From Azolla caroliniana (lineage: Eukaryota; Plantae; Polypodiophyta), in NCBI GenBank assembly GCA_043228905.1, contig JBHGNT010000009.1:5642001-5706000 (forward strand): a stretch of DNA of 64,000 bases. Direction: 5' to 3'. Numbering within the stretch: the first letter of the stretch is position 1; each line of letters begins with the position of its first letter. The position numbers were made by a program, and so were the translations under genes. Of this stretch, positions 3,906 to 64,000 are shown one piece after another. The notes under the pieces were generated by a model that worked only from the letters and a program-made list of their open reading frames with translations, searched no databases and had not been told where the DNA came from.

Positions 3906-4149
3906 TCTTCCGAGAATTCTTGATTTTGTTGAAAATCTTGATTGTGCTGAAAATTACTTTGTTGGAAAGACTGATTATTTTGTTGAAAAGCTGGATTTTG
4001 CTAGAATTTATTCTGCTAAAAGGTTTGATTGTTTTGAAAATTATTCTGTTGAGCTTGTAGAAAACTATTTTGTTGGTATCTATTATTGAACGAATTCTGT
4101 TTATTGTGGTTACCCATTTTCCGAAAAAAATTGTCTTACCGGAGCTGTC

Positions 4150-5579: not shown

Positions 5580-5826
5580 TACAATGCTCTCTGCCTTTGA
5601 TCATATTCGACCATGCTTTCCACATCTTTTCGATTGAGCCCAATCCTTGCACGAATTTCTCTCACAACCACAGTGTGCACTCTTGATTGCAACATTCATT
5701 GGTAAAGTCCTTGAACATCGAGAGTCGGTACTCACTTTCACACATATCACATGAAATGTAATATTTTTGGTCTCATAGGTAATATTGGAACTCCGACAAC
5801 AATAATATAATCTATTTATATATCTA
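5580..5826 (+). mobile_element. 3'-terminal fragment of the RTE/RTEX-like LINE
   Basis: Clearly homologous to 26944-27190 including the ATCT-type tail. Confidence 0.88.
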
Positions 5827-6960
5827 GGAAAGCATTATTTGCCAAACAATAGATTTAAGCCAAAAGATGGATTTTGTCCCGTGCTTGGGGGAGTCTTCGC
5901 TTTTTTTTCATTAGCAGACTTGATTACCTTTCCCCAAAATCTTGATCCGATCTATGAGTCATCAACCTTCAACCTAGAGGCAGTTGAAAAGTACATCACC
6001 TGAACATTTTTCGACTCTACGTCCTCCATCAATTTCTTCATTCCGCCTTTGCCGAAGTTGGATTTTAGGGGTTGTTAGGTCTCAGAGGAGTGGATTCTCT
6101 CATTTTGATAGAATATACGGTTTCTTTCTAACGTTTCCTTATGAATTTGACAATCCCTTTTTAGGTGCTCCATGCTATTGCACCATATGCATTGGCGGAT
6201 GAGTTCCCCTTTTTTTCCTTGATTGGGCTTCTTTTCGACACCCGAGCTTTCACCCTTCTCAAGCTTTGTGAACGTGGGTTGTAAATCCCTTGTTTCCTTT
6301 ACCAACTCATTGACAGATGACTCTGGCTCCTTTCCTTTACCAACATCCATTCAGGTTCCTAATTCTTCTTTTGGACATTCTTTGATAGTTTTCATATCCA
6401 TCCTCTATCCTTATTGTGCTCCTTCTTAGTACTTGACAAGCCTTGGGTACCTCCGCCCAATCAGACACCAAACCGATTGTGCTTGTCTTGTCCTCTAGAA
6501 GAATGGTGAGATCTTTTCTAAAAGATTTATCTACCGCTTAACGAATATATCCACCTTCTCTGATTGTAATAGTTGTTGATCACTCTCAGCAACTCTGAGA
6601 CTAAGAGTCCTTTACCCCCTTTCTCAGTCCATTTGAGACAGTTGTTCTTTGACATTCAGGTCCATTCTTCTAGCATATATTCATCAAACAATGCTTGACA
6701 AAACCCGGCTCAATCTTCACAGAATTTGTCCGACAATTCTGTTACCTTCACTCGGAGTTCAAGTGTGCAAACTTGGTTGATATGCAACACAATATGTACT
6801 CTGGTTGCCCCTGTGTTGGCCATCTCATATTCGTAGACCTCGAGGAACTGATTGACGTTGTCGTAGTGTATTTCGTACACTACGTGAAAAAGTAAAAATA
6901 ATATAACCGATTTAATTACATATAAATAAATAAAATAAGAATATCAAAACATTTATCACG

Positions 6961-7032
6961 TGCATAGGGCAAGATTCAAACCCTATACCTCCACATAGCC
7001 AAACCCCAACTTTACCATTATGCTACCTTATC
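6961..7032 (-). promoter_or_regulatory. tRNA-like A/B-box module in U3 of element B 5' LTR (copy at about 8328-8399)
   Basis: A box TAGCATAATGG (7025-7015), B box GGTTTGAATC (6982-6973), spacing 43 nt, T4 run at 6946-6949. Confidence 0.7.
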
Positions 7033-7582
7033 TTTAGTGTTCTATAAATAGATTTAATAACTATAAGTGCTTTATTTGCGCCTACCTTTATTAAAAGGTA
7101 AATCATGTATTTTTAGAGTGCGTGAATCTTTTATAGAAAAACGCAAGCAACTAAAAAGTGACTCATGCACATCTAGCGTGCATGAGCACTATATTTAACA
7201 AATAAAAGCAAGGATTAGAAAAGCATCACATGCACATTTAGTGTGCATGAACATATTAGAAAAAGCATGTAGCTATGCTTAGTCTCTCCCATCACTATAT
7301 AAGGATGGGAAGCACATTGTAGTTTTGTTGATTTTTTTTCTATAATGATCAATCAATCTAAAATATTCGTGGGATTCAGGAATTTGCTAAAATAATTCTC
7401 TCTTACTACCTAAATATTGACTAAATATACTAAACTCGTGGGATTCACGAGATTCTTATCTTATAACTCTTTATACCTATTCTTTACTAGTCTTATTTGT
7501 ATTTTTCTTCCTCCTAGTCCAAAACCTCGGCGGTTCCCACCCGACTCACACAACGATCCGTTGCCGAAAGGCACGACACATT

Positions 7583-7600
7583 TGGTGAACCCGACGTGAA
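7583..7600 (+). promoter_or_regulatory. Primer binding site complementary to tRNA-Trp 3' end
   Basis: TGGTGAACCCGACGTGAA is the reverse complement of the plant tRNA-Trp(CCA) 3' end TTCACGTCGGGTTCACCA; 4 nt after the LTR; same PBS at 62343-62360 (-). Confidence 0.85.
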
Positions 7601-9072
7601 GACGGGTGGCAAGGGGATGGAGAATCAACAAGAGGCGATGAACATGATGATGATGATGGTTGAGCGGATGCAACAAGAACAACGCGCGATGACGGAGATG
7701 AAGGCGGCAATAGAGCGGCTTGTGCGACGAAATGGGGAATTCAACAGAAATGGTGTGTCACGCTATCTACGTGACTACAAGGCGGAGATGATGCGATGTG
7801 GGATACCGGAAGGATTGCAAGTGATATCCTTCAGTCGGGTAGCCACGGATGAGTTACAAGAAAGAATCTACAAGATACGGCAACAAAATCCAACATGGGG
7901 GTCCTTTGAAGAAGCTTTACGAGAGGCATATGACTACGAGAGATCGATCGAACGAGAGCGATCCGGAAAAAAGTCAAGGTTGATGAAGACAAGAAAGAGG
8001 CCAGTAAAAGACACTACCACAAATGACAAGGGCCAAGAATATGACGAGAGAGAACAAAGAATATGGTGGATCGGATGGCGACAATGGTTCGGGTGGAAAG
8101 AATGGGTCTACTCAAAATGGAGAGACAAAGTTGACATAGCGGGACAAACGGAGGATGAAGGGGAGACAACGAGCATCGGCAACTTCGGCACATACCGGAG
8201 GATGTGCGGGTTCGGAGGGGGCGAGTGTCGTAGTGTATTTCGTACACTACATGAAAAAGTAAAAATAATATAACCGATTTAATTACATATAAATAAATAA
8301 AATAAGAATATCAAAACATTTATCACGTGCATAGGGCAAGATTCAAACCCTATACCTCCACATAGCCAAACCCCAACTTTACCATTATGCTACCTTATCT
8401 TTAGTGTTCTACAAATAGATTTAATATTACTATAAGTGCTTTATTTGCGCCTACCTTTATTAAAAGGTAAATCATGTATTTTTAGAGTGCGTGAATATTT
8501 TATAGAAAAACGCAAGCAACTAAAAAGTGACTCATGCACATCTAGCGTGCATGAGCACTATATTTAGCAAATAAAAGCAAGGATTAGAAAAGCATCACAT
8601 GCACATTTAGTGTGCATGAACATATTAGAAAAAGCATGTAGCTATGCTTAGTCTCTCCCATCACTATATAAGGATGGGAAGCACATTGTAGTTTTGTTGA
8701 TTTTTTTTCTATAATGATCAATCAATCTAAAATATTCGTGGGATTCAGGAATTTGCTAAAATAATTCTCTCTTACTACGTAAATATTGACTAAATATACT
8801 AAACTCGTGGGATTCACGAGATTCTTATCTTATAACTCTTTATACCTATTCTTTACTAGCCTTATTTGTATTTTTTTTCCTCCTAGTCCAAAACCTCGGC
8901 GGTTCCCACCCGACTCACACAACGATCCGGCGCCGAAAGGCACGACAACGTCCTCACCATTAAACTTGTCTATCCACTCGATGACCATGTGTACGGCAAG
9001 TGTTAATTCACTTTCCATCTGGTTCATCGCACTTTGCTCTTACATCGTTGTCATCAGTTTGTGTTCATTCTA

Positions 9073-27195: not shown

Positions 27196-28191
27196 TCCCT
27201 CCCTCCCTCCCTCTCTCTCTCTCTTCTCTAACCCCAATAGAGGAACATTCACTATTCTATTCTACTCTATTCTCAGCACACACTTCTGTTTGCCCTAGGT
27301 GTATTTATACTAATACACAGAATGAGCTATTTACAATCATGAGTATTATTATTATCTAATAATATTAATGGTCTTACTAATTGTTAATAATTAGGTAACT
27401 AAGCAAGGGTTAATTAGTACCTAATTATGTGATTAAGTTAAGCGGAAGATTAAGTGATATGTGTGTGTATGTGTGTGAGAGGAAGAGAGAGAGAAGTACG
27501 CTTATGAGCAACACAAGATGGGGGATGATTAACTCTATATTAAATTAGCATTATCATCATCAAATACAAAAATACCCACAATGATGTATATATAGATCTC
27601 ATGTGCAAGGGTGCACATGTGTGAGGAGAATATAGGTACAAGGGTGTAAGTCCTATATTAAATGTACTTGGGAGTGGAGGATCTAGAATATCCCACTTAA
27701 GTACAAGGTCCTATTAAAGGCGTTATAGTCAACACTTCTAACTAGATTCTATCTAGGTAACTACGAAGTTACATGGTTGACTAACTAACTAAACTAACTT
27801 GAGCTTGATCTCTCAACACCCCCCCTCAAGCTCATGTGTGAGGTGCCTAACATCCGCTTTGGCTTTCGTCGGCTTCGTGTGCTACCGTCCCGCCTTCGAC
27901 CTTCTTCGTCGTGGCAATCTCAGTTCCTCCCCCTCAAGTCGGTGATGAAGGCTTGTAGTGTGTGGGCGAATGTCGACTACTTCAACCCATCGTGGGTTAC
28001 GAGCCGCTTCGGTTGAGCTCTTGGGCTCTTGTTCGGCCGCTACCTTCATCACGAAGGCATAGTGATGGGCCATGTAGTTGTTGTAGCCGAGCTGAGTGAT
28101 GAGATTCTTCTCTCTAGAAGAGCGTCGAAGTTTTTCACTCGCCGATGTGAGCGCATAATGGAAACGCATTGTCTGGTGAGGGAGCTGTCAT

Positions 28192-28261
28192 GATATAGCA
28201 AGACGTGAACCCATGACCTTATGTTACATGGGTCGAGCTCTTACCATTAGGCTATATATTA
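28192..28261 (-). promoter_or_regulatory. tRNA-like A/B-box module at LTR 5' end of element D
   Basis: A box TAGCCTAATGG (28254-28244), B-like box GGTTCACGTC (28211-28202), spacing 43 nt. Confidence 0.7.
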
Positions 28262-28646
28262 TAATACTAAGGATATTATTTTCATTTAAATTTTACTATA
28301 GAAAATTGATGTATATTCCAGATTTCTCTGGAACATTCTAGAAACTTCAGGAGTACTCCTGAGAACACTATAAAAGGAGGCACAAGGCATTATTTCGAAC
28401 CAAATCGGTATATTATAATACTAAGGATATTATTTTCATTTTTTCTCTGGAACATTCTAGAAACTTCAGGAGTACTCCTGAGAACACTATAAAAGGAGGC
28501 ACAAGGCATTATTTCGAACCAAATCGGTATATTATAATACTAAGGATATTATTTTCATTTTTTCTCTGGAACATTCTAGAAACTTCAGGAGTACTCCTGA
28601 GAACACTATAAAAGGAGGCACAAGGCATTATTTCGAACCAAATCGG
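28255..28646 (+). repeat. Triplicated TATA-containing LTR segment (119-bp unit)
   Basis: 28409-28527 and 28528-28646 identical; first copy has about 35 extra bp. Confidence 0.92.
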
Positions 28647-31600
28647 TTCAATGCCAATCTTATGCCTCCTAGCTATCCTTGTACATTTTTTCACATAATA
28701 TATCGTTATTATCATCATTCTCTCTCTCTCTCTCTCTCCTTTTCTCGACTGTTCTACACCCTCTTTTCTTCTTAGTATTAATCTGCATCTCTTAGTACTA
28801 CTTTATCTCTGTTTCAGTACTATTCCTAACAGCTTGAATTGATTTTGCATCTCTTTACTCTTCCTTTTATCTTCTTACGTTTCTCTCCCTTCATACTAAT
28901 ATCTTATTCTTCTTTCATCTCATCCTATGGACATTGTTAGCGCTCAAGAATATCAATCTGTTTTCTTAGAGCTGCAATGCTTGAAAGAGAAGTTCCGTGC
29001 TTTGGAACAAGAAAATCAACGGTTGTTGGGGGATCTTCAACAAATATCCTTAGAAACACAGTTGACGCAACAACAACATGAGGAACTAGCGGTACGCGTG
29101 CAACTCGAAGCAACCATAGTAGCGATGCAACAAGAAGGACCCACTACGCAAGGGATTCATAAAGAACCCAAGATCGGCCTTCCCATGAAATTCGATGGAA
29201 CGCGATCATAGTTTAGATGGTTCCTTAATCAGGTACGATTAGTCATTCAAATGCATCCTTCTCGATATCCCACCGATGCATCACGAGCAAGACTAGTAGG
29301 CACTTTACTTAGTGGCACGGTTTTGGCACGGTTTGCCTCCTTGTTAGAAAAACGCTCTCCCTTGTTAAATAATTTCGAAGAATTTATTACTGAGTTTAAA
29401 ACCTGTTTTGGAGATACCGACAGTGTTATAACAGCAATCAACAAAATTCGGAGATTGCGCCAAGGTGAGCGGCCGACCTCATCTTATGCTACGGATTTCC
29501 GTCTTCTCGCCACCGATATTCCTTGGGATGAGCAGGCATTAATGGAGCAATTTCGTTTACCCTACGTAATGATGTTAAAGATTTACTCTTAACTTTCCCC
29601 GAGGAGCAAAAGTCATTGACAGTCTAAGCAATCAGTCGTGCGGTGCGATGCGATAACCGCCTCTTCGAACAACGTTCAGAACGTCAGTTCCAAATGCCAA
29701 GGACAAAATCAGAGCCCACCTATGCTTCAATCGTAGCAAATCCTTTCCCAAGGGAGTCATTCTATATATCTTCAACAAATACTCCGACTCCAATGGAAAT
29801 CAACACCACATGTCGTCGCGGAGCACTATCGGAAGAAGAAAAGCAGTGACGCATGGCAAATCGATTATGCCTTTATTGTGGTGGACCGGGGCATATTGCA
29901 ATGAACTGTCCCCATCGGCCGAAAAGGCAGGTAAATCAAATAACCGTTAGTACTAATAATACTAAACCCGAGTCTATTCCTCTAGGTGTGTTTGATAGTC
30001 CTAATAGCCCAAGCCTTTCAAATAAATTTGAAATCCTTAGTCAACTAGAAGAAGAGTTAAATGATTAATTCCAGCCAAAATAGGAGTTGTTTGGTTGGAC
30101 AACCCTAGATCTGTGCAACCCATTAGTGGTTCCATTTCCTCTAAGCAAGTTAGCAATGTGTTCTTAACTCAAGTAATGGTTAGTACTAAAAGTACTCCTC
30201 CAGTACATGTCCTAGCACTCTTAGATTCCGGAGCCAACTCTTGCTTCATGGATAGGAATTTTGCCCAAGCTCATCAGATATCCGTAAAAAACTACCGTGT
30301 CTAGCCTCTGTAGTAGTCATTGATGGTCATCCCATTGCTTCCGGAAATATTATAGAAGAGTCAAAACCCGTTAATATTGTCCTAGATAACTTAGCGTGTG
30401 TAATATCATTTAATATAATTAATATCCCAAAATATCCCATTGTTTTGGGATTACCATGGTTCGAATTACATAACCCACACATAGATTAGAGAACAAGAGA
30501 AATATGGTGTCGACAAACCCGAGTATCTACTGATAAGATTGCAACCATTTCGTTGCATCAATTGCATGAGAAAGGACGCAAGGAAGAAATGTTTCTCTTT
30601 GCAATATTAGTAAAACCCTCCAGTATCAATAAAGAGGAGTCCACCGTTCAACTTCCATAGAAGTATCGTCATTATGCCGATGTGTTTGATAAAGTACAAG
30701 CCAATACGCTTCCTCACCATCGACCGTATGATTGCCCCATCGATTTACAACCGGGAAAAGAGCCACCATGGGGACCGATCTACAATTTGTCACCAACCGA
30801 GCTAGAAGTCCTTTGAGCCTATATAGAGGATAATTTGGCAAATGGTTTCATTTGACATTCGAAATCTCCAGCCGGCGCACCCATTTTCTTCGTCAAGAAA
30901 AAGGATAGATTACCATGGATTGAATAAATTCACCATCAGGAATAGGTATGTGCTTCCCCTTATCTCAAGTCTTTTAGAATGGATCAATGGTGCAAGGTTC
31001 TTCACAAAGATCGACTTACGAGGAGCATATAACCTCGTATGAATCCGACCAGGAGATGAATGGAAGACTGCGTTTCGCACCAGATATGGGCACTTTGAGT
31101 ATACGGCCATGCCATTCGGCCTCACTAATGCGCAGGCAGTCTTCCAGCACATGACAAATGATATGTTCCGAGATCTCTTGGATGATTTTTTGATCATATA
31201 TTTGGATGATCTACTGATTCTCATGTGGAACACTATAAAAGGAGGCACAAGGCATTATTTCGAACCAAATTGGTTCAACGCCAGTCTTAAGCCTCCTAGC
31301 TATCCTTGTACATTCACATAATATATCGTTATTATCATCATTCTCTCTCTCTCTCTCTCAATCTCTCTTCTTAGTACTAATCTGCATCTCTTAGTACTAA
31401 TTTATCTCTGTTTCAGTACTATTCCTAACAAGAGCCGACACATCCAAATCACTCTCGTCGGGGTGGTCGTCTTCGTATTCGGGCATCTTACCTTTGCCTT
31501 TTTCCGAGGTCGTACTTGGCCGCAACGTGCTTGGGTCGCATGGGGGCTCTTGTGGCCAACTAGGCCTTCATGTAATCGGACTTTCTTCGAACATGTGTTC

Positions 31601-36042: not shown

Positions 36043-36086
<44 letters not shown>

Positions 36087-40174: not shown

Positions 40175-41201
40175 TGTCGTGAAGTACGAAAGCTTCACAT
40201 TAATAGTCTACAGTAAGATAAATACGTAATGAAAATAAAATAAACCTTTATAATGTTAATAACATACAATGATAATATTATACATTATATGTAGAGACAA
40301 AAAAAAAAATATCTATTATATTACATGGGTAAGAGAGGACTTGAACTAATAAACCCTACATTATGACACTCAAAGGTTACCATTTAGCCTATACTAATAA
40401 TTTACAAAATAATATATAATTTTTAGTATTTTATAGCCTAAACCATGTAATATAATACATGCACAAAATTACATGGGCAAAAGAGGACTTGAACCAACAA
40501 CCTCAAACCTTATATAGCATTCACACCTTACCATTTAGCCTATACTTATAATGTATATTAGTACATGTCTTGTTTTCATTCTAAGTAGTATTATATGGTT
40601 TAAACCATCAAACGTCCTACATGTGCACCATATAGCACACATGCAAGAGCCTCTCTACATGTGCGCCACATGGCCCACATGTAGAACCATCTCTTCCCTA
40701 TAAAAGGGGAAGGAAGTATAGACAAAGGGACAAAGAAATAAGATGGAAATGATTATATTGGATCTAGAGAAAGATATTTTGTAATAGAGAAAGAGAGAGA
40801 GAAAGGTATTCTTAAAAGAGGAAAGAAGAACTAGCTTGGTGGTGGTGGTCCTCAACTCGCAATGGAAGGGTGGCGGTTCGAGTCTTATACTTGTCGAGAG
40901 ATTGAAGGGAAGACTATGTTCTACCATCAAGAAAGAGAAGAGCGATTACCTTGTGAGACAAAGCTCGAAGGATCAACTATGCTCGCAATCATTTTGTAAC
41001 TCATTCATCAAATAATTATAGGTTTCTTTCATTCCTTCAAATATCATTCTATATCCCATCTTGTCATATCTTGTTCATCTTTATTTACTCTATCTCTACT
41101 CTTTCGTCTCTTTCGTCCATAATCCCAGTGATTCATTCCTCACTTTCACGATATCTTCTATCAACACAACAGTACGCTTCTAGGCAAGCCATGCCACAAC
41201 A
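40175..41201 (+). mobile_element. Solo LTR (TGTCGTG...CACAACA) inside L 3' LTR [element H]
   Basis: L 3' LTR rejoins exactly when it is removed; flanks GCAG/ACGG versus GCGG at 35823-35826 in the intact LTR; TATA CCCTATAAAAGG near 40696. Confidence 0.85.
40323..40548 (-). promoter_or_regulatory. Two tandem tRNA-like A/B-box modules in solo LTR H
   Basis: A box TAGGCTAAATGG (40391-40380; 40542-40531), B box (A/G)GTTCAAGTCC (40347-40337; 40495-40485), T runs downstream of each. Confidence 0.68.
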
Positions 41202-42854
41202 ACGGTGCGTAAACCACGAGGCTGTTGGAAAGATATTCCGCGTAGGAATATATTTTGGGAGTTAGTGTAGAGCTCACTTATGTGCATTGAAGTACGTGTC
41301 AGTACTTCTGCTAGTCCGTATGGACTTGTATAAAAGTGCTCACTGAGCACATCCTTTGTACAATCTGAGTATTATTTTTTTGAATTGAGTTTTGTGTGCA
41401 CTCTCTCTCTCTGTCTCTCCCGCATACTATGTATATTATTTGAGCTCTCCATTAAACCTGCGTTTTTGTGTTCGGTTTTCTATTGCTTCCGCACGCTATT
41501 CTTTTTACAAGCTTTCTTCAAGCTTCTGATACTCCTTGTATCTTGACCGACTGTCAACATGTCAACTACATATAACAAGAGAATCAAGAAGTCACCTTTG
41601 TCGTACCTTTTGACGAACACACAATGATCCGTCTCTGTTTTCTGGAACCCATGCTCCACCTTGAAGAATTCGAACTTCTTGTACCATTGACATGGAGCTT
41701 GTTTCAGACCTAAACCCTAAACTTTTCTTCAGTCAACACACCAGGTTCTCTTTGTCTTTCTCCTCAAAACCTTGGGGTTGTTGGATGTAGATCTCTTCAT
41801 CCAGCTCCCCATGCAATAATGTTGTCTTTGACATCCAACTGTTCGATCTCTACGTCCATGCTGGCAGATATGCTTAGAACAATTCGGATGGATGTCATCT
41901 TCCCTACTGGTGCGAATATCTCGTTGAATTCGACACCCTTTTTCTGTTGGAACCCCTTCACCACAATGCAAGCTTTGTACCTAGGTGTTTTATCGATTTC
42001 TCCAGTCTTCACCTTATAGACCCATTTGTTTCTAAGTGATCTCTTACCTTTTGGTAATTCTACCATGTCGTAGGTGTAGTTTTCGTGCAAGGAGTCCATC
42101 TCATCTTGCATCATGGTTAGCCATTTTTCTCTTTGCTCATCAGCAACATAGCACTCTGGTTCACCTTCATCAGTCAAGAGGATGTATTGACTGGCATATG
42201 TCGTCGGTGCTCTCCTTTTTCTGAGTGGGTATCCCCTTCCACTCGTTGTCGGCTCCAGCTCGGATGTCTCTAGAAACTCTTCTCTCGGCTCGGGTTCATG
42301 TATGCCGATCGGCTGCTCAAGGTTGGATGAATTCAACTCGTATTCCTTGATCTATCTTAATACCTCTGCCGACTCAGACTCATTGTCGGTCGGTCTCTCT
42401 GAGTTTACTGACCCGGATTCAACTGTGCCAACTAGCTGTCTCCGAACAACTTTTTTAAGATTGCTTAAAGTGTGCGGCACTTCATCGGGGGTTGTTTGGG
42501 GTGGACTCAAGTTTAGATCTTATTTGTATGTCTAAACATAAGTAGTGATATAGTTTTAGAAGAATAGAAAAGTGAGGGCGTGGGTGGGGGTTAGGGGAGT
42601 GTAGCTTGTTGAAGTTATCAAAAGTATTTAAACCTAATCAAAGTTTTTAGAACATATTAAAGATCATTGGGATAACTTAAGTTATTAGACACCAATAAAG
42701 TACTATTAAAACACCAATATAGAGTATTATTAAAACGGGACCACACGCTTAGATGAACGGGAGTTGTTTAAACACACGCTTAAGCAAACACATAAAAGAA
42801 AGATTATTATAAAAAAAATAAAAATAAAAATAGAAAAGAGAGATTGAGATTAAA

Positions 42855-47502: not shown

Positions 47503-48680
47503 ACCCCAACCGAGGAATGCTCACTATTCTGTTCTACTCTATTCTGAGCACACACTTCTGTTTGCCCTTGTGTATTTATACTAATACATAGAATGGGCTA
47601 TTTACAATCATGGACATTATTATTATCTAATAATAATAATAGTCTTACTAATCCCCTGACTCATCGGGTCGATTCGACTAGTCGGCCTGGTCATCGACCA
47701 TTAGGTTGGCCTGACTAGCCGGTCTTGTCTTTGACCTCAATCATCTCTTGTAAACTCTCCATGCCGGCGCTCTTGTAAACTCCTCGACTGTCTGCTCTCA
47801 TCCGACCAGTCGACTACTCCTTGTCTTCGACTGTTGACTCTCTTCGAGTAGTTGGCTCCTGCCACTGGAGGGACATATTACTACCAATGTGTATGTTTTA
47901 CCAGAGATTCTTAAATACATAATTCATGAAATCTTGATCATTGAAATTGATATATAATTGCTTGTCTATGAATAAGTGTTATTAAGTCAACATGATGAAT
48001 TTAGTTTTTAGGGAAAATGAAGTTTCACATGCACCTATGGTGGAAATTTAATAGATTACTTTGTGTACATTTATCCATGATTTTATTTCATTGGATCCTT
48101 TTTTTTCCAAAAAAGGAGCTACTTTCCCATTAGTTAGGAGAGATTTTTACAGAAAGGCTATACAAGATGACTTAAATATAAATCGGGGAATAACCCCATG
48201 TCTGAGTTCAAGAATATGAGACTACATATATCCTCTCATACTTTCTCCTTAATGTAAGTAGGTACCTAAAGCTATAAACTAGTGACAATCATTGCCGGCC
48301 AGCACAAGCCCGATCTTTGAGCTTCAACGGATGGCAAATGGGAGGTGAGGAGGAAACAACCAACGTGGAGGCTGGTAGTTCCACCTCGGGCCATTAACAC
48401 CTTGCGTCACCATCAGTGTGTTCCTCCATCTCTGTCAAAAGTGTAAACAGGCAGTGACCACATTATCGGAGTGACCGCAAACCTCGTCCAACTACTCTCA
48501 TAGGCAATTGATAATCACGAACCAAATATCCATGATCAATTCCTCCAAGGGGCGTACTAGATCTTGGAAGACCCTTTGTCATGAACAATACTGAGACAGA
48601 GAAGGAATTAGTACTAAACGAAGGATTAGTATTATGAGAGGTGTGGAACTTCTTCGAGAGAAGGAAGAAGTGAGCGAGAC

Positions 48681-48729
<49 letters not shown>

Positions 48730-49016
48730 TGATAAGAAAGATATTTATTATATGAAGAGAATATACAACGGTGGCTAAAAGGCTTAAGACTGGCGTTGAA
48801 CCAATTTGGTTCAACATAATGCCTAGTGCCCTCTTTTATAGTGTTTTCAGGAGTAATCTTGAAGCTTCTAGAATGTTCCAGAGAAATCTGGAATATACAC
48901 TAATTTCGTATAATAAAATGTAAATGAAAATAATATCCTACGTATTACAATAGATGGTCTAATGGTCAAGAGCTCGACCAATATAACCTAAGGTCATGGG
49001 TTCGAGTCTTGCCATA

Positions 49017-52000
49017 TCATGACACTATCCCCCCTTTAAAACGGCGAGTGTCACGAGTCGTCTTGGATTGAGGACCCGGTTTGTGTGGATATTGACGATG
49101 GAAGTCTTCAAGAAGAGCACGAGCATTGGTTACATTCTCGATTGGTTCCCAAGTACGTTCGCTGGGACTATAGCCTAGCCAATCGACTAGATAGTAGAGC
49201 TTGTTGCGAACAATCTTGGAATCAAGAATGGCGGCAACCTCGTACTCCGGCCCATCTTCAAGCTCGATCGGGGGTGGAGGTTGGATAAGACGTTCTGGGA
49301 TGGTGCTCTCGTGGTAGGGTTCGAAGAGAGAACTATGAAACACCGGATGTATCCGAAGTTGAGGAGGTAGATCGAGACGAAAAGCAACATCATTAATCTT
49401 TCCAATAATACGGAAAGGACCTAATCGCCGATAATCCAACTTCTCACATGGGCGAGTAGTCTTGATGTGTCGTCGTAGCAACCACACCCGATCTCCAATA
49501 TTAAAACTAGATGGAAGTCGATGACGATCCGCGTAGACCTTGTGTGTTTGTTGAGCTTGCTGGAGATGAGTTGATAAATCCGCTTGTATCTTGTGTAACC
49601 GCTCCAAACGATCCTCCGCGCACGGATTTGTGGACACCTCTGGGGTTTCAAGTACACTCCACCGGGGGTGACATCCCGTATAAGCATAAAATGGCGTAAC
49701 TTTAGTGGATGCGTGGATAGAGTTGTTATAGGCAAATTCGGCGAAGTGGAGAATATCTGCCCAGTCGTCCTGATGATAGCTGAGAAAGCACCGTAGATAC
49801 TGCTCCAACGTTTGATTTGTTCATTCAGCTTGGCCGTCAGTTTGTGGGTGGTAGCCGGAAGAGAGGTTACAAGTGACCTTGAGCATGTTAAAAAGGTGCT
49901 TCCAGAATTTTGACACAAACTGGGGTCCACGGTCGTTGATGATACTATCGGGGAGTCCATGATGTCGACATACTTCACGCATGACAATTTCGGTAGTGTC
50001 TTCACTGGAGATCTCCTTAGTACATGGCAAGACATGAGCCATCTTCGTATATCGATCGACCACCGTTAGAATCGCATTGAACCCCTTAGAGACTGGAAGA
50101 TCTGTGATGAAGTCTAGAGCAATGGATTGCCACGGCTTGCTTGGAATTGATAATGGTTCTAATAAACCATATGGATGATGCCTTGGCATTTTCGCTCTGC
50201 AACATGTATCACAAGTCCGAACAAAATCCTCGACAAATTGTCGCATACAGGGCCACCAGAATGATCGTTGTACTAAATGTAATGTTTTAGTACTACCAAA
50301 ATGCCCAGCTGTATATGTGTCATGACAGTTTTGTACTACTCGAAGGCGGCAAGAACCATTAGGAACATACAAAAGTTCTTTAAAGAAGAGTAATCCATCA
50401 TGGTATTTGAATTGCCGATAGTCCGTACCTGGTGGTTGCGACTGTGAACACGACGCTCGAGAGGGATCAATTTGTGCTAGTATAGCTTGGGCGAACGCAT
50501 CTGTCTTCAAGTCTTCACGTATGGTATCGATAACGCGGGAATCCATAGGCATGTCAAAGATTTGTGTTGCTTGTAATCGTGCCGGTCCCAAGATGACTTG
50601 TTTTTGGTTATCGAAAGCTGGCTCGCCGGGACGGGGTGCTAGATACGAACGCCGTGATAATGCATCTGCCTTCCCTTGGTGCCTCCCCGGACGATATGTA
50701 ATTTTGAAGTCGAAACGCGTGAGGAAGTGGGCCCACCGAGCTTGACGTCGATTCAACACACGAGCATCCTGAAAGTAGGCAAGATTCTTGTGGTCACTAA
50801 ATACGGTGACTGGATGAGAGGATCCCTCCAGAAAATGCCTCCATTGCATAAAAGAATCCACTATTGCCAATAGCTCCTTATCATGGATTTCGTAGTTGAT
50901 TTCGGCGGCATCAAACTTGCGTGAGTGAAAAGCCACAGGATGTAGCTTTTCATCATTCCCCTGTTGTGACAGAATGCTCCCCAATGCAAAATCCGATGCG
51001 TCAGCTTCGATAATGAATGGTTTCTCCGGATCGACATGAGCTAGAATTGGAGCCGATGTAAATGCTTTTTTAAGACTCTCGAAAGCCATGTCTGTTTCTT
51101 CAGACCAGGTGAACGGTTGTCCCTTCCTGGTAAGTTGTGTGAGAGGTAGAACGATCTTTGAGTAATCCTGTATGAACTTTCGGTAAAAATTGGCAAAGCC
51201 TAAGAAGCATTGCACATCCCGTACCGAACGCGGAGTCTGCCATTCTACCACCGTTCTGACCTTAGCTGGGTCCATGGAGATGCCTTCTGACGAAATGATG
51301 TAGCCGAGAAATTCCACTTGGTTGCACCCGAAACTACATTTTTCTAGCTTTGCATACAGACCATGTTCTCGAAGTCGTTTTAGTACTAATAGTACATGAG
51401 AATCATGTTCTTCTTGGGTCTTTGAATAAACCAGTAGATCATCCAAATAGATGATCAAACAATCATCCAATAGATCTCGGAATATATCATTAGCCATGTG
51501 CTAGAAGACTGTCGGCGCATTAGTGAGGCCGAACGGCATGACAGTATACTCGAAGTGCCCATATCTGGTGCGAAACGCAGTCTTCCATTCGTCTCCTGGT
51601 CGGATCCGTACGAGGTTATATGCTCCCCGTAAGTCGATCTTCGTGAAGAACCTGGCACCATTGATCCGTTCTAAAAGACTTGAGATAAGGGGAAGAGCAT
51701 ACCTATTCCTTATTGTAACCTTATTCAAGCCACGGTAATCTACAACGAGACGAAGCGATCCATCTTTTTTCTTGACGAAGAAAATGGGCGCACCGGCTGG
51801 AGATTTCGAATGCCGAATGAAACCATTTTCCAAATTCTCCTCTATATAGGCCCGAAGGACTTCCAGCTCGGTTGGTGACAAATTGTAGATCGGTCCCCAT
51901 GGCGGCTCTTTTCCCGGTTGTAAATCGATGGGGCAATCGTACAGTCGATGATGAGGAAGTGTGTTGGCTTGTACTTTATCGAACACATCGGTGTAATGGC

Positions 52001-52607
52001 GATACTTCTCGGGAAGTTGAACGGTGGATTCTTCTTTAGTGGTGTTGGAGGGGTTTACTGATATTGCAAAGAGGAACATTTCCTCCTTGTGCCCTTCTTT
52101 ACGCAACTGACGTAGCGAAATGGTTGCCATCTTCTGAGTTGACCCTTGGGTTTGTCGACACCGGATTTCTCTTGTTCTCCAATCTATGTCAGGGTTATGT
52201 AACTCGAACCACGGTAGTCCTAAAACTATAGGATGTTCTGGGATACTAATAATATTAAATGATACTACACATACTAAGTTATCTAGGACAATATTAATGG
52301 GCTCTGACTCTTCTAGGATATTTCCGGAAGCAATGGGACGTCCATCAATGACTACTACAGAGGCTGGACACTGGAGTTTTCTTAGGGATATCTTATGAGC
52401 TTGAGCAAATTTCTTATCCATAAAGCAAGAGTTAGCTTCGGAATCTAGGAGTGCTAGGACATGTACTGGAGGGGTACTTTTAGTACTAACTATTACTTGG
52501 GCTACGAACACATCACTAACTTGCTTAGAGGGAATGGAACCACTAATGGGCTGCACAGATCTAGGGCTGTCCAACCAAACGGCTCCTATTTTGGCTGGAC
52601 TTAGTCG
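49017..52607 (-). pseudogene. pol: Pol (AP-RT-RNaseH-INT-chromodomain), single frame with two nonsense codons
   Basis: ORFs 51501-52574, 49821-51497 and 49017-49808 share one frame; stops TAG and TGA from CAG/CGA; LLDSEA (DSGA in D), YLDD, DASD, HHCC, GPF, EYEVAAIL..YLVDWLGY..TWEP. Confidence 0.95.
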
Positions 52608-52613
52608 TTTAAC
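52560..52613 (-). promoter_or_regulatory. Putative -1 ribosomal frameshift signal (G TTA AAC + stem/pseudoknot)
   Basis: pol lies in the -1 frame; heptamer 52613-52607, 6-nt spacer, 11-bp stem GTCCAGCCAAA/TTTGGTTGGAC. Confidence 0.75.
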
Positions 52614-53752
52614 TCTTCTTCTAACTGACTAAGGACATCAAATTTGTTTGCTAGATCTGGGATATTAGTACTATTAGGACTATCAGATATCCCTACTGAA
52701 ATAGGTTCGGATTTAGTACAATTAGAACTAGCGACTATTTGGTTTACCTGTCTTCTTGGCCTATCGGGGCAATTTATTGCGATATGTCCTGGTCCACCGC
52801 AGTAAAGACATAGTCGATTTGTACGGCGTCGCTGCTTTTCTACTTCGGATAATGGCCCTCGACGACGTGTAGTGTCAATCTCCATCGGAGTCGGAGTATT
52901 CGCTGGAGACGCATTATATGACTCCCTCGGAAAAGGTCTTGCTACCACTGAGGCGTAGGTGGGCTCTGATCTTGCCCTCGGCATCTGTAGCTGCCGTTCC
53001 GAACGTCGCTCAAAGAGGCGGTTGTCACATCTCACCGCGCGACTGATTGCTTCTGTTAAGGACTTTGGCTCTTCGGGGAAGGTCAAGAGTAAATCCTTGA
53101 CGTCATTGCGTAAACCATAACGGAATTGCTCCATCAACGCTTGATCATCCCAAGGGATATCGGCGGCGAGTAGGCGAAAATCTGCAGCGTATGCGGAGGC
53201 TGGACGGTCACCTTGGCGTAATCGCCGGATTTTGTTGATTGCGGTCCTGATGCTGTCAGTATCTCCGAAACATGCTTTAAACTCACCTAGAAACTCTTCA
53301 AAATTGTTGAGTAACGGAGATTCCTTTTCTAATAGTGGAGCGAACCATGACAACGCTGAGCCACTTAACAAAGTGCCTACTAAACCCACTCGTGATGCAT
53401 CGGTGGGATATCGGGAAGGATGCATTTGAATAACTAATCGTACCTGGTTAAGGAACCCTCTAAACTGCGATCGTGTTCCATCGAACTTCGTGGGAAGGCC
53501 AATCTTAGGTTCTTTATGAATCCCTTGTGTTCCGGGCCCATGTTGTTGCATCGCTACGATGGTGGCTTCGAGTTGTTGCACGCGTAACGCAAGTTCCCCA
53601 TGTTGTTGTTGCGTTTGCTGCTTTTCTAAGGAGATTTGCTGAAGATCCCCCAGCAACCGTTGGTTTTCTTGTTCCAAAGCATGGAACTTCTCCTTCAAGC
53701 ATTGGAATTCCGAGAAAACAGATTGATATTCTTCAGCGCTAACAGTGGCCAT
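52601..53752 (-). CDS. gag: Gag (Ty3/gypsy, PEG10/sushi-like capsid, CCHC knuckle)
   Basis: Intact 383-aa ORF; [34 protein letters not shown]. Confidence 0.95.
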
Positions 53753-53810
53753 GGGATGAAAGAAAAGAGGAATAAAAGATTAGTAGGAAATGAGAGAGAC
53801 AGAAGGTAGG

Positions 53811-53823
53811 CAAATTGGTTCAA
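53811..53823 (-). promoter_or_regulatory. Self-priming PBS (no tRNA complementarity)
   Basis: TTGAACCAATTTG just after the 5' LTR is complementary to CAAATTGGTTCAA (54063-54051), 32 nt downstream of TATAAAA. Confidence 0.8.
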
Positions 53824-53929
53824 ACTGTCATGAACAGTACTGAGACAGAGAAGGAATTAGTACTAAACGAAGGATTAGTACTATGAGAGTTGTGGAACTT
53901 CTTCGAGAGAAGGAAGAAGTGAGCGAGAC

Positions 53930-53984
<55 letters not shown>

Positions 53985-54202
53985 TGATAAGAAAGATATT
54001 TATTATATGAAGAGAATATACAACGGTGGCTAAAAGGCTTAAGACTGGCGTTGAACCAATTTGGTTCAACATAATGCCTAGTGCCCTCTTTTATAGTGTT
54101 TTCAGGAGTAATCCTGAAGCTTCTAGAATGTTCCAGAGAAATCTGGAATATACACTAATTTCCTATAATAAAATGTAAATGAAAATAATATCCTACGTAT
54201 TA

Positions 54203-54274
54203 CAATAGATGGTCTAATGGTCAAGAGCTCGACCCATATAACCTAAGGTCATGGGTTCGAGTCTTGCCATATCA
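54203..54274 (+). promoter_or_regulatory. tRNA-like A/B-box module at LTR 5' end of element F (copy at about 48948-49019)
   Basis: A box TGGTCTAATGG 54210-54220, AGGTC variable-loop-like motif, B box GGTTCGAGTC 54254-54263, spacing 44 nt. Confidence 0.78.
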
Positions 54275-55142
54275 TGACACCCTTAGGTAATGTGCTTTCC
54301 ACACTAAGAGGGTGAAGCCTGCAATCAACATCCAAATCTCTTGGAAACGAGGGGATACGGTCTTCAACTCTCTTTCAAATCGGTTATTGACAAGTTTACC
54401 TATTCTGCATGAATTCTTACTTTAGCAAACTTACAAGCATGAGTTGATATGTAAGTTAGAGGGTTCATAGTCTAACTTGTAGCTTGTAATAGGCATAACC
54501 TTAAGGACCAAATTTAAAGATAGTTTGAATGGGCTATGGGTAGGATAGTTGGGATATAAGTTAGCTTAGGAACTAAGAAAAACTAATGAGGATTTGGCAC
54601 ATGGGAATGTGGTGCTAGTCTAGGAGGCTTATTTGTTGCACTACTTAAAAAAAACTAGCTACCTCATTCATTATAGTAACTTGAGAGGTTAAGCATCTTT
54701 AACCCATTCATTTCGGTAAACTCTTCTGCTATTTCTCATCATTAGTTCCATTTGTAATACATATGCTTTATAAAGGGAAAGGAGTTATATAACATGTAGT
54801 TAAATTTGTAGGAGTTATGTTTCAGATTTGTTGGTGATCTTTGTGTACATTGTTATGTTGGTGATAAAATTGAAGAAAATATCATGAAGCCATGTTTCTT
54901 ATTCTACTCTTACAATTATATTGAAGCCAAATATTTTGATTTTGTAGAGTTTTATATATTTCTTTTGAAATAACAAGTTTCAAGGATTTTGAGCCTTACT
55001 AGATTCATGCACTAAGAAGGCCTCATTGATACATAGCTTCACATAATATGTATGTTAATATGGAGTGTGTGAATGATTGTAGTCATTATGCGAATTTATG
55101 TAGTAAAACAAAATACCTACTTATTCATGTCAATGTTCACAT

Positions 55143-58492: not shown

Positions 58493-59508
58493 GTGAGTCT
58501 CTGTTGTAATCACCGCTAGGCAAAGATTGTGAGCACGAGGTCATTGCCTCTGTGTTCCCCTGTTGTATTCTCCTTGCATAGTGAGAGTTGGGGTTTGTGG
58601 ACTTCCGTGGTTTTTCCCGTTTAGGGTTTTCCACGTTAACATCATGTGCATTATCTTCTGTTTGTGTACTTACTTCCATTTCTCATCTTTCTATGTTTGA
58701 TTATCATTAAGTGATCTAAGTCTCGGTTGTGGCCGAAGATTTCCACATATTCTCGTCAATCTGGTATCAGAGCAAAACAACACAGAAAATGGAAGATTCA
58801 TTTGGCAGCATGTTCAAGCTCACTGGCTCTAACTACTCAGTGTGGAAATCGAAGATGAGGGACATGCTTGTGGTTAAAGAACTTTGGTTGCCGGTTCAGT
58901 TCGGGGACAAGAGACCGGACAAGATTGATGCCACGATATGGGAGGTGATGCACATGAAGACAACGACGTACATACGGTGCTTCATCGACATGAGCCTTTA
59001 CAACAACTTTAATGAGGAGAGTAAGGCTCATGAACTCTGGGAGAAGATCAACATTATGTTCCAGAACAAGAATGCCTTTAATCGGGTTTCGGTATTCCGG
59101 AAGCTAGTGCGGCTTCAATACCAAGATGGCTCTAGTATGGCGGAGCACATGAATGCCTTCCAGGGGCTGATTCACCAGGCAAACTCGTTGGAAGTACCTC
59201 TCGCCGATGAGGTACTAGCTCTACTCCTGCTCAGTTCCCTCCCGGATAGCTTGGAGACGTTAGTTGTCACTTTGGGCAACGCCGGGCCGGAAGGAAAACA
59301 ACTATCCCTAGCAAGGGTCAAGTCGAGCTTGCTAGATGAGGAGGCGTGTGGAAAGACAAGGAGGTGATCTCCTTACCAAATCGGAACGTAGAAGACAAAA
59401 GAATCGGAGTCCCCAGAACTGGAAAAAGTCGGGGACACTGTCAAAGTCAAGGGGGAGGCCCACTTGCTTCTATTGCGGCAAGCGGGGCACTTCTAGAAGA
59501 ACTACCGT
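58131..59508 (+). mobile_element. Copia 5' part (A/I-related) [element N]
   Basis: LTR 58131-58758 with CCCGGTGAGAAC-type repeats; PBS 58762-58773; gag MEDSFGSMFKLTGSNY from 58789. Confidence 0.92.
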
Positions 59509-62500
59509 TATCGTGCCTTTCGGCTCCGGATCGTTTGCGTGAGTCGGGTGGGAACCGCTGGGGTTTTGGACTAGGAAGAGGAAGAATTTGAGACGATTTT
59601 AATTATGAGTAGATTATTAGAAACTTGTGAGTCCCACAAGTATAATGTATTTTATTGATTAATATTTACGTAAGAATATGTATTTAGATTGATAGAGAAA
59701 GATATAGAAATCTCGTGAATCCCACGAGTATAGTTTATTAATTGGTGTTTTCGGAAATATATCCAATTTCCAAGTATTTCACACCCTCTTCACATTGTGG
59801 TCCTCATCCTTATATAGAGATGAGAGAGTCTTTTCCAACCCATGCGTTTTCTCTAACTATAGACTCCATGCTTTTTCTATAGATAGACTGTATGCTTTAT
59901 CTAAAGTGATCATGCTTTTTCTAACTTGTGCGTTTTTTTATAAACTATAGTGTTCATGCACGCTAGATGTGCATGCGTAACTTTTTCTTTTAGCATGCGT
60001 TTTCTTTTAATTAAAGTTTATCCTAGGTGAACTTAGCTTTCTATGTGGGACATCTACTTTTTAACACTAATGAAATGCTAGTTTAATGGTAAGGTTTCAC
60101 ATTATTAACATGGAGGGGCAATGTTCAAATCTTGCCCTATACATGTATTATTTATTTTCACATTTTCTTCTATTTCTTCATATTTACTAAAACGTTACTT
60201 TATAAGTTTTTCATGTAGTGTACGAAATACACTACGACACTCGCCCCCTCCGAACCCGCACATCCTCCCGTATGTGCCGAAGTTGTTGGTGATTGTTAGT
60301 CTCGTCCGTCCGTTCTCCGCATGGTTGGTTTCGTCACTGGTCGTTTTCGGTTGCCGGCTCTGTCCGGTCGCCAGTTTTCAGTTGCTTGCTCCGCCCGGTT
60401 TCTGGTTACCGGCCCTCGTAATTCTTCTTTACTTGTAGTACCCTCCGTTTCTCTCGCTATGTCGACTTTTTCTCTCCATTTTGAGCACAACCATTCTTTC
60501 CACCCAACCCATTTTCGCCATCCGATCCACCATAGTCTTCGTTCACTCTTTGCATAGCCATGGCCGATTGTCGCGGCTCCTCGTGCTCCTCTTGAGCATA
60601 ACCATTCATGTCTTGTCAAATTTGGTTGGCCCGCTTGGTCCTTGTTATCCATGGTAGTGTCTTTGCTTGGCCTCTTCCTTGTCTTTATCAATATTGATTT
60701 CTTTTCAGATCTCCAGTTGAGTCGGATTAGCTTCTTTCCAATTCGATATCGTCCGATTGTCTTTCAGGTTGTATCGGCTTCCATTCCGATTTGTATTCGG
60801 CTGATTCAAACTCGGTTGATTGGTTTTTACTGATTCAACCCCCTTCCGGATCTGTGTCAACCGATTAGTTTCCGTCCAGATTTTCTTTCTTTTCTTTGTT
60901 TTCACCAGTCTTGACAAGTTTGACTTCCGGAACTTCTTTCCGGATCGATCTCTTCGATCGACTTCCGGTTGGAATGATTTCCGTCCGTCTCGTACTCTCG
61001 GATTTTGCCCGGATCCACTCCCGCTTGCTTTAGCTTTCTTTTAGACCGGAATTTCGGACGGATCATCTTCCATTCGAACCAGGTTCCGACTTTACCTTCC
61101 TTGCCGCCATCTCCCATCTCTCCGGTCTCACGTTGCCTCTCGAACGCAACCGCTGAAGTCTCTAGGATTAATGCGCATGAACCCTCGGTATTATCATCCT
61201 TTGTCATTTCAACCATAGCCACCTTTTCGGCTATCTCTCCATCGTATGAATCGGCTTCGACCTTTGTTTTCTCTCCTCCACCTTCCGTCTCTTCGGTATC
61301 ACGTTGCCTTTCGAACGCAACCGCTGGAGTCTCTGGAATCAGTGGTGGGGAAGTCTCAATATGGCCATATGCCATTGATTCGTCTATAGACACCTTCAAT
61401 TCGATGTCATCTTTTGCGGCGACCTCCTCAATCAAGTCCTCCTTGCTCTCTTTCACTGCATCAATTATGCAATCATCAATTATGCTTACCCCTTTTTCAC
61501 CCGATGTTTCGGACACTTGTATTCCGAAATATTCTTCTACACTTGGGTTATCGGCCTTATCCTTCGCCGTCGTTCTTTCGTAAGACAAGAGGGTAGCTGG
61601 TTTTACACCCTCTTCCGTCGCACCTTCATGTTGTATTTCGGCCTTCATATCGGCTCCATCGTTTGTCTTCAATCGACGATCCTTCATCGGCCATGTCGCT
61701 GACAAGATTCTCATCTTCCTCTCATCATGTCTCCGGCATACCCTTTGGACTTCAGCCCAATCTTCAGTAAGACCATTCACACTGTCATCGTCTTCGAGTT
61801 CGATCCCGATGTCCATCCTTTCTTTTTAATCAATCGATTTTACGAACATTAGGACTTTATCCTCTCCCACCAATCTTTGTTCCTGCTTCGAGAGTCGAGC
61901 AAAACGATGCTCGAACTCTAGGAATACTTGTGTTGCACTCCGGTAGGTCTTCTCTGATGCCACCCATTCGTTGAATTCTCGCCAATCTTGTCCCTTCGAT
62001 CTCTTGAAATCATATGCCTCTCGTAAAGCTTCTTCAAAGGACTCTCATGTTAGGTTTTGTTGCCCTATTTTGTGGATTCTCTCTTCTAACTCATCTGTGA
62101 CTACTCGATTGAAGGATGTCACTTGCAATCCTTCTGGTATCCCACATCGCATCATCTCGGCCTTGTATTCGCATAGATAGCATGACATATCCTTTCCGTC
62201 GAATTCCCCGTTTCTTTGCACAAGCTGCGCTACTGCCGATTTCATCTCCGACATTGTGCGTTGCTCTTCTTGCATCCGCTTAATCATCATCATCATCATA
62301 TTCATCGCTTCTTATTGATTCTCCATCTCCTTACTACCCCTCTTCACGTCGGGTTCACCACTTGTGTCGTGCCTTTCGGCTCCGGATCGTTTGCGTGAGT
62401 CAGGTGGGAACCGCTCGGGTTTTGGACTAGGAAGAGGAAGAATTTGAGATGATTTTAATTATGAGTAAATTATTAGAAACTTGTGAATCCCACAAGTATA

Positions 62501-62556
62501 ATGTATTTTATTGATTAATATTTACGTAAGAATATGTATTTAGATTAATAGAGAAA
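59509..62556 (-). mobile_element. Gag-only non-autonomous LTR element related to B [element G]
   Basis: 3' LTR 59509-60239; PPT 60240-60255; tRNA-Trp PBS 62343-62360; 5' LTR 62365-62556 (interrupted by M); in-frame gag-like ORF about 62327-60902 with acidic repeats; no pol. Confidence 0.88.
60072..60143 (+). promoter_or_regulatory. tRNA-like A/B-box module in U3 of element G LTR
   Basis: A box TAGTTTAATGG 60079-60089, B box TGTTCAAATC 60122-60131, spacing 43 nt, TTTT at 60155-60158. Confidence 0.65.
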
Positions 62557-64000
62557 TGTTGAGAGACAAGCTCAACATCGGCCGGATCGGCTGAAGAAGC
62601 CGAGGACCGGATCGGTTGGGACCGATCGGTTAGGCCGAATGCGTAAACCGGTATGCAGACCGGTGCATAGGTAGGGCCGGATCGGTGCATAAACCGGGAG
62701 GCCGTTAGGAAAGATATTCCGTGAGGAGTATATTTGGGAGTTAGTATAGGAGCCCTTAATGAGCATTGAAGTACTGTCAATACTTCGGTCAGTCCTTCTA
62801 GGACTTGTATAAAAGTGTTCATTGAACACACATATGTATAGAGTGTGGTGAATAGAGATTGTGTATTTTTTGAAGATACTTCTTGTGTTTTCCTCTCTCA
62901 CTCTCTCTGTCTCTCCCGCGTATACTACGTGAGCTCAAGCTCTCCATTAAACCTGAGTTTTGTTCCTTCTGTTCGGTCTTCATACTTGCTTCTGCACGTT
63001 ACTTTTTATATGGTATCAGAGCGCGAGGGTTGAGAACCTCTCTGCAGCCAACACAGCTTGATGAAGAAGAACAAGAAGAACGATGGATAGAGGCATAGCG
63101 AGCTCGCTTCCAACAGAGAAGCTCGACAGAACCATCTACGCGTCTTGGTCCTACAAGATGCACCAGTACCTGCTCGGGCACGGGTACTGGAGTTATGTCG
63201 AAGGAGCTAATGACGCGGCACCCGAATCCACATATAGAGACTTCCCGTCGTGGGAGCAATCGGCGAGCAGGGTATTATACTGCTTCGCGTCGTGTGTGGG
63301 CGAACAACTATTGAGCTATGTTCGGGATGCAAAGACGCCGAAGGGTGTGTGGAAAAATCTGAAGAAGATTTTCGCCGCGAGCACCACAACCAGGAAGCTT
63401 CAGCTCCGACAGGAGTTGAGCAACCTACGACAACGCGACTTGTCGGTGGCGGACTATACCTCGAAGATCAAGGATATCTGCGACTCCGTCGCCTCCATAG
63501 ATGTGAACATTGAGGAGAGCGAGATGGTCCAGATCTGTCTCGGAGGTTTGGCGTCGAAGTTCGGAGCGTTTCGAATGGCTGTGTGTACCCGGGAGAAAAC
63601 GTCGTCCTTTTTCGACTTACAGTCAATGCTCCTAGTAGAGGAGAACCACGCGGGTGCGTCTACAAGCACGCACACCGACAACAGAATGTTGTACACGGAG
63701 GGAGATAGGCCCCGTGGACTTGGAGGACGAGGCGAGTTGGCGCGCAATGGAAGCGGCTGACGAGACCAAGGAAGAAGGCACCGAAGTGATGCCGACAGCA
63801 ACTCCGGACCCTCTGGAAACAGGGGGAGTCGAAGCGATGAGAACCGGCAAGGGAAGGCCATCGCGGAGTGCTGGTACTATGGCAAGAAAGGCCACAGGGA
63901 AAGTGAGTGCTGGAAGAAGTGCGCCGATTCAGAGAAAACCGGTTCCGGAAACGGCTCCGGACATACCGACAAGAGAAATCGGCAGCGATCGCACTACGCC
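62557..64000 (+). mobile_element. Copia 5' part (L family), runs out of window [element M]
   Basis: LTR 62557-63010; PBS TGGTATCAGAGC 63011-63022; gag 63083-63760 and knuckle near 63870. Confidence 0.93.

Follow-up and report, generated by a model that had tools for sequence, protein, structure and literature searches.

Antisense tRNA-derived modules in the U3 of Azolla caroliniana LTR retrotransposons as possible entry sites for TFIIIC and Pol III

The window analysed here was a 64,000-nucleotide (nt) stretch of Azolla caroliniana DNA (assembly GCA_043228905.1, contig JBHGNT010000009.1, positions 5,642,001 to 5,706,000, forward strand), and it displayed a nest of long terminal repeat (LTR) elements. 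Eight modules of about 72 nt were located in the unique 3′ region (U3) of LTRs belonging to the Tcn1-like chromovirus elements D and F, the elements B and G of a second family, and the solo LTR H (Table 1). By the sequence evidence collected below, these modules derive from a transfer RNA (tRNA) gene and are inherited as part of U3, in an orientation directed away from the element. The favoured reading, to which we give a probability of about 45%, is that the module, as a tRNA-gene relic inherited with the LTR, would act at the DNA level as an entry site for transcription factor IIIC (TFIIIC) and RNA polymerase III (Pol III).

The eight modules and their tRNA origin

A profile built from the eight modules matched exactly these eight in the window, and this search detected no further copy, free-standing copies included; all modules proposed by an initial annotation of the window were recovered in this way. 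As that annotation had also claimed, all eight ran antisense to the element and lay upstream of its TATA box, and the A-box start was separated from the B-box start by a tRNA-like distance of 43 to 46 nt in every copy. Read in tRNA sense, the module displayed a D-loop-like block (e.g. TAGCCTAATGG) first, and its 3′ part was composed of AGGTC, three to five bases, and a T-loop-like block such as GGTTCGAGTCT. Placement at the very start of the LTR, another feature of the initial annotation, was true of D and F (11 nt from the LTR end) but not of B and G (about 100 nt inside) or H (about 150 and about 300 nt).

The modules of different families could be found from one another. A profile made only from external metagenome loci (see below) had seven of the eight window modules as its top seven window matches (E values of 4e-8 for F, 6e-6 for D, and 0.003 for G), with the first module of H lower, at E 5.9, and a profile made only from B, G, and H gave F and D as its next best window matches, at E about 0.01. 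These cross-family profiles, together with about 65 module-free control LTRs of other chromoviruses (see below), ruled out chance resemblance. The textbook box consensus was matched at seven to eight of the nine specified bases per box, but a crude score of this kind was by itself non-discriminating (14 to 15 of 18 in the modules versus up to 14 in the background), and the apparent B-box matches in other chromovirus clades were GC-rich chance matches.

Two criteria were applied for a tRNA: the gathering score of the Rfam model RF00005 (29 bits) and a cloverleaf called by ARAGORN. ARAGORN at default settings reported 0 tRNAs in the window, and at thresholds of 80 to 85% it called only the second module of H (H2) and the modules of two relatives of F, L003 and L004; the Rfam tRNA model had no window match at the gathering score, the best window score being 13.1 bits (H2). 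A real tRNA gene or pseudogene in the window was ruled out by these scores. The relatives were better preserved: L082 matched the full-length Rfam tRNA model with 21.8 bits (E 0.011 once corrected for the full 4227 families) and displayed a 7-bp acceptor stem, and L004 reached 15.8 bits. Because L082 and L004 still score against the tRNA model, the modules do come from a tRNA, despite the decay of F and B beyond recognition. The claim of tRNA derivation was accordingly borne out, and the Rfam check that had been suggested for it gave 13.1 bits for H2 in the window, no copy at the gathering score, and no match for F or B.

Two more specific origins were considered. Of the features of a short interspersed nuclear element (SINE), a tRNA-related head was found, with no recognisable body and no free copy in the window, and an AT/T-rich stretch followed the head in B, G, and H. 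Plus-strand read-through into a primer tRNA would give the antisense direction, but it misfits both the self-priming clade of D and F (see below) and the internal position of the module in B, G, and H, and it was left as speculation.

Conservation, inheritance, and possible function

Relatives of F were sought with the last 263 residues of its integrase, which gave 80 chromovirus loci from metagenome contigs, and eight further loci were added through exact protein look-ups. The same module was harbored by L007, L001/L002, L003, L004, L008, L042, L081, L082, L084, L086, and L087, all from independent assemblies and with 48 to 79% integrase identity to F; it was on the antisense strand in these relatives, where it followed immediately on the polypurine tract and the start of the LTR (TGTCATG or TGTCA), and in the Tcn1-like clade every lineage having one carried it 11 to 50 nt from the LTR 5′ end. 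About 65 more distant chromovirus LTRs, serving as natural controls, contained nothing like the module. In the integrase tree, F, L001/L002, L003, and L004 formed one clade with full support, and L008 and L042 were placed nearby; two state changes sufficed for module presence on this tree (79 rows), fewer than in any shuffle. Within the Tcn1-like clade, the module is inherited, most simply from one gain, and the "convergent" design suggested by the initial annotation gave way to descent there. TCTTGCC(A/C)TAT after the B box was common to F (54260-54272) and B/G (6959-6975, 60130-60145) and was missing in L001, L003, and L004, though these are the closer protein relatives of F; as weak evidence, this sharing may reflect exchange among LTR families within a single genome, or a donor shared by them.

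Sequence comparison of nine lineages gave mean identities of 0.58 for the A box, 0.65 for the B box, and 0.78 for AGGTC, while the spacer (0.33) and the flanks (0.29 to 0.33) were at chance level, so that the boxes proved better conserved than the spacer, as had been predicted. In the Tcn1-like clade alone, each box reached 0.63 and AGGTC 0.91, against 0.34 in the spacer. The distance between boxes was 42 to 46 nt in 14 of 16 copies. Pairing in the T, acceptor, and anticodon stems did not exceed that of permuted partners, whether the register was fixed or sliding, and this ruled out a kept RNA structure on the tRNA-sense strand; a decoy tRNA-like RNA, one of the roles initially proposed, is unlikely for the same reason. 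The conservation pattern fits selection on the two promoter-box sequences as DNA, so that we regard the boxes as constrained, and it misfits recent independent captures, because these would still fold. AGGTC (e.g. 54245-54249) corresponded to tRNA positions 44 to 48, and it was kept better than either box.

A/B-box DNA can act through TFIIIC without a useful RNA, as exemplified by tRNA-gene barriers in yeast, TFIIIC sites in fission yeast, mouse B2, and the heads of tRNA-derived SINEs. Such tRNA-gene, SINE, or TFIIIC barrier sites are free-standing, and we know of none described as a fixed antisense part of the U3 of an LTR retrotransposon. In the modules described here, a tRNA-gene relic became part of U3 and has since then been transmitted with the LTR, its stems, anticodon region, and flanks now being at chance level. 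Two further points are proposed: (i) the cassette would act as double-stranded DNA, namely as a TFIIIC binding site with or without outward Pol III firing; and (ii) it would do so at the upstream edge of the LTR's own RNA polymerase II (Pol II) promoter, composed of a heat-shock-like element and a TATA box. The likeliest benefit would be that the edge of the promoter stays open and protected within the silent chromatin to which chromodomain integrases are directed. Short outward or antisense Pol III transcripts might arise as a side product or serve a further function, and the antisense placement would spare the genomic RNA a tRNA-like fold at its 3′ end, and with that fold cutting by RNase P/Z. 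An insulator role of the module is plausible. The fullest version of the proposal, namely that an old clade of self-priming chromoviruses of non-seed plants and at least one other LTR family of this genome would carry their own TFIIIC-bound chromatin barrier, antisense at the outer U3 edge, and would thereby shield a stress-responsive Pol II promoter from integrase-targeted heterochromatin, is rather unlikely to hold as a whole.

Several observations weigh against a TFIIIC/Pol III entry site: (i) anchoring of the alignment inflates box identity somewhat; (ii) the tRNA-invariant C56 was replaced by T in B, L007, and L082; (iii) the B box was broken in the D copy, and L008 and L042 had lost the A box and the normal spacing; (iv) the F and B modules had no Rfam tRNA match even at E up to 10 when about 100 nt were searched alone; (v) a T-run terminator was present in only 3 of about 10 lineages of the F clade and was not conserved, and only some lineages had four or more consecutive T within about 30 nt; (vi) AGGTC, the best-kept stretch, lies outside the canonical B box and to our knowledge is not a known TFIIIC contact; (vii) L085, with 69% protein identity to F, had the B-box half deleted and the A box decayed, and since it does without that half, at least one copy can dispense with the module; and (viii) sequencing contigs of four runs (probably DNA), over 5,901 letters, gave no start, strand, or level. 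The L085 locus (1264-1330) read TGTCATGATA and then passed almost straight into the anticodon-side part of the module.

Among the competing explanations, the one that survives best, while itself unlikely, is that of a neutral passenger: a tRNA or SINE copy in an ancestral LTR would merely be decaying, and the box conservation would come from anchoring, shared ancestry, and few lineages. Decay of this kind would account for the broken boxes of D, L008, and L042, the half module lost in L085, and the background-level scores of F and B against the tRNA model. It does not readily account for boxes that were 58 to 65% and an AGGTC that was 78 to 91% identical next to spacer, flanks, and stems at chance among proteins differing by up to half, for the box distance held in nearly all copies, or for the recovery of window copies by profiles from other lineages.

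Use of the module as DNA-level motifs without the Pol III machinery, be it as Pol II factor sites or as a nucleosome-positioning element of an LTR enhancer, is quite improbable. It would agree with the strongest conservation falling on AGGTC, which reads GACCT on the element strand and lies immediately beyond the canonical B box, with the replacement of C56 in three lineages, and with the presence in U3 of other short conserved promoter blocks (heat-shock-like element and TATA box); however, two A/B-box-like blocks at tRNA distance are what a TFIIIC site needs and not what an enhancer in general needs, and the orientation was uniform.

Under repeated capture, different tRNAs or SINE heads would have entered the separate LTR lineages, and only the positions common to all tRNAs would look conserved, without selection in the LTR. 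AGGTC, D loop, and T loop are indeed universally conserved tRNA parts, the spacer was at chance between the Tcn1-like clade and B/G/H, and the TCTTGCC motif shared by F and B/G but not by the closer protein relatives of F could be taken the same way. This explanation is nonetheless very unlikely: the stems were at chance level in nearly all copies, though recent captures should fold, the module of the Tcn1-like clade always had the same place and direction, fitting one gain, and the window held no free-standing copy.

The last alternative was a replication signal of the Ty3 type, in which a U3 complement of the tRNA T and D arms binds the primer tRNA and bridges the genome ends. In Ty3, U3 pairs with the T arm and the D arm of the primer tRNA (PMC5371799), and this precedent would explain the antisense direction, the location in U3, and why it is precisely the complements of the D loop and T loop that are conserved; such a bridge is barely probable here, and both it and the use of a module RNA as primer were rejected, because F and D use no tRNA but self-prime, their primer-binding site complementing their own transcript start, and because the T stem implied by the B/G primer-binding site (TGGTGAACCCGACG) mismatches the module, while the distance to the LTR end also varies from 11 to about 300 nt. 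The 13-nt complement of the F primer-binding site (Table 1) is presumed to be the 5′ end of the transcript that acts as self-primer. F and D thus have a Tf1-type self-priming signature; in the pair of D (28832-28848 and the R region near 28620), both partners had changed in a compensatory manner, and two G-U pairs were present as well. Chromoviruses of the Tcn1 clade, from non-seed plants, are known to self-prime (PMC6317226).

Elements carrying the modules

The coordinates of the modules and of the elements that carry them are collected in Table 1.

Table 1. Modules, LTRs, and associated features located in the 64,000-nt window
Feature	Position	Strand	Remarks
Module, F 5′ LTR	54204..54276	+	Antisense to F; A-box-like TGGTCTAATGG, B-box-like GGTTCGAGTCT, 44 nt start to start; 11 nt from LTR 5′ end
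Module, F 3′ LTR	48949..49021	+	Antisense to F; directly after polypurine tract
Module, D LTR	28189..28259	-	Antisense to D; B box damaged (GGTTCACGTCT)
Module, B 5′ LTR	6959..7030	-	Antisense; about 100 nt inside LTR; TAGCATAATGG / GGTTTGAATCT, 43 nt start to start
Module, B 3′ LTR	8326..8397	-	Located by profile search
Module, G LTR	60074..60145	+	Antisense to G
Module 1, H	40324..40394	-	Antisense to H promoter
Module 2, H (H2)	40472..40546	-	Least decayed window copy; 13.1 bits against full-length Rfam tRNA model
F 5′ LTR (454 bp)	53826..54279	-	Tcn1-like chromovirus; 5-bp target duplication CCCTT on both flanks
F 3′ LTR	48577..49024	-	LTR pair 97% identical
F polypurine tract	49025..49038	-	AAAGGGGGGATAG (element strand); abuts U3 start
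F coding region	49017..53752	-	gag, reverse transcriptase, RNase H, integrase, SH3, chromodomain; domain search of frames
F primer-binding site	53811..53823	-	Self-priming type, TTGAACCAATTTG; just after 5′ LTR
Exact 13-nt complement of F primer-binding site	54051..54063	-	32-45 nt downstream of TATA box
F heat-shock-element-like palindrome	54116..54133	.	GAAnnTTCnnGAAnnTTC; perfect, four-unit; in U3 between module and TATA box
F TATA box	about 54088-54095	-	TATAAAAG (element strand); read in 5′ LTR
D 5′ LTR	28186..28831	+	Family of F; 119-bp promoter unit (heat-shock-like element plus TATA box) three times; element truncated near 31430
B 5′ LTR (720 bp)	6859..7578	+	B is a 2.09-kb non-autonomous LTR element, 6859-8947
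B 3′ LTR	8226..8947	+	Preceded by polypurine tract GGAGGGGGCGAG
G 3′ LTR	59506..60239	-	Family of B; first 30 nt near-identical, rest 65-71% identical
H solo LTR	40175..41202 (end approximate)	+	Inserted in another repeat; flanks continuous in copies 35684-36988 and 62549-63805

Element F was 5.7 kb in length, and its domains, identified by reading frame, included the zinc and core domains of integrase, the Tf2-type SH3 (SH3_Tf2-1), and Chromo. The initial annotation had regarded it as a coding-complete chromovirus; despite the full domain set, F is not coding-intact, because it had in-frame stops near 51501 and 49821, by which two frames were split, and gag and pol were in different frames. 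D and F shared 81 to 88% nucleotide identity and hence belonged to one family, and this is a Tcn1-like (Tf1/Sushi group) self-priming chromovirus family, as judged from the chromodomain integrase, SH3_Tf2-1, and self-priming.

Several side features of this family were recorded. The palindrome GAAnnTTCnnGAAnnTTC was also present in the F 3′ LTR (near 48861-48878), D had three copies (28312-28668), and similar heat-shock-like motifs were kept in the U3 of the relatives L082, L084, and L085. A long (GA)n microsatellite was located within the part of the F LTRs that comprises the repeat and unique 5′ regions (R/U5), at 53925-53981 and 48676-48730. DNA contigs of several runs joined the F flanks (48573/54309) while skipping the element, some of them with about 30 extra letters between; the flank of F was a repeat itself, and its other copies were without F. 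The F family was very abundant, with tens of thousands of contig pieces within single runs.

Element B was complete but non-autonomous. Its LTRs, with 98.5% identity, enclosed an interior of 647 bp, and it also had a primer-binding site and a target duplication of about 5 bp. Element G ran from 62556 down to 59506; its 5′ LTR remnant comprised the last 190 bp only (62367-62556), and its primer-binding site, like its LTR start, was almost identical to that of B. The LTR starts of B, G, and H (6859-6885, 60213-60239, and 40175-40200) shared TGTCGT followed by a hairpin (8-bp in B/G and 7-bp in H), and 100 to 150 nt of AT-rich sequence separated this start hairpin from the module.

No Pfam domain was detected in the reading frames of B and G, and homologues of the G frame were likewise without domain, so that classing B/G through its reading frame led nowhere. 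Of the three different gypsy-type families in which the modules had been placed by the initial annotation, the chromovirus family of D and F stood; "gypsy-type" is unverified for B/G and H, because no recognisable domain is encoded there. Contig L088 started like G (LTR end, primer-binding site, and first reading frame), and beyond this start it contained a 1082-residue antisense reading frame without Pfam domain (3018-6266, minus strand) and a downstream reading frame with a zinc knuckle (6405-8032, plus strand), with no pol in reach; L088 may be an autonomous partner of B/G.

Related systems and implications

[quoted passage not shown] The elements studied here resembled Helenus in that the LTR harbored a tRNA-derived stretch with conserved A and B boxes and no functional tRNA, and likewise in their primer-binding site and polypurine tract and in target duplications of 5 bp. 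They differed from it in two respects: (i) F represents a 5.7-kb protein-coding lineage and B is a 2.09-kb non-autonomous element with 720-bp LTRs, both outside the Helenus size range; and (ii) the box pair is sense in the published Helenus model (PMC10886601), whereas the cassette described here was antisense and upstream of a normal TATA promoter. Cassandra and Ajax also have a Pol III gene fragment built into the LTR and inherited with it, but their source is 5S ribosomal RNA, the orientation is sense, and they are TRIMs only.

The modules resembled the bipartite primer-binding site of Ty3 in that U3 complemented the T arm and the D arm of a tRNA, but F and D self-prime and the primer tRNA of B/G mismatches the module. 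F and D were like the Tcn1 clade (Tf1/Sushi group, non-seed plants; PMC6317226, PMC2864245) in their chromodomain integrase, Tf2-type SH3, and self-priming site, and the Tcn1-clade papers (PMC6317226, PMC2864245), searched for the term tRNA, contained no mention of a tRNA-like LTR module. Literature searches on tRNA-like LTR modules in chromoviruses, on TFIIIC with LTR, and on box A/B with LTR returned only Helenus and Cassandra, and no description of an antisense tRNA-derived cassette in the LTRs of protein-coding elements was found in them.

Fragments of small-RNA genes in LTRs have been known only from tiny non-autonomous elements (Cassandra, Helenus, and Ajax), where they are thought to drive the element itself. 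The present fragment faces the other way, resides in protein-coding elements with a normal promoter, and was kept through deep divergence of a clade. The tRNA relics in these LTRs can confuse the annotation of tRNAs and SINEs in fern and moss genomes. If the module is bound by TFIIIC, it would make the retrotransposon a mobile element carrying its own boundary element, and it would bear on the expressibility of retrotransposons in silent chromatin and on the spread of TFIIIC sites through large plant genomes.

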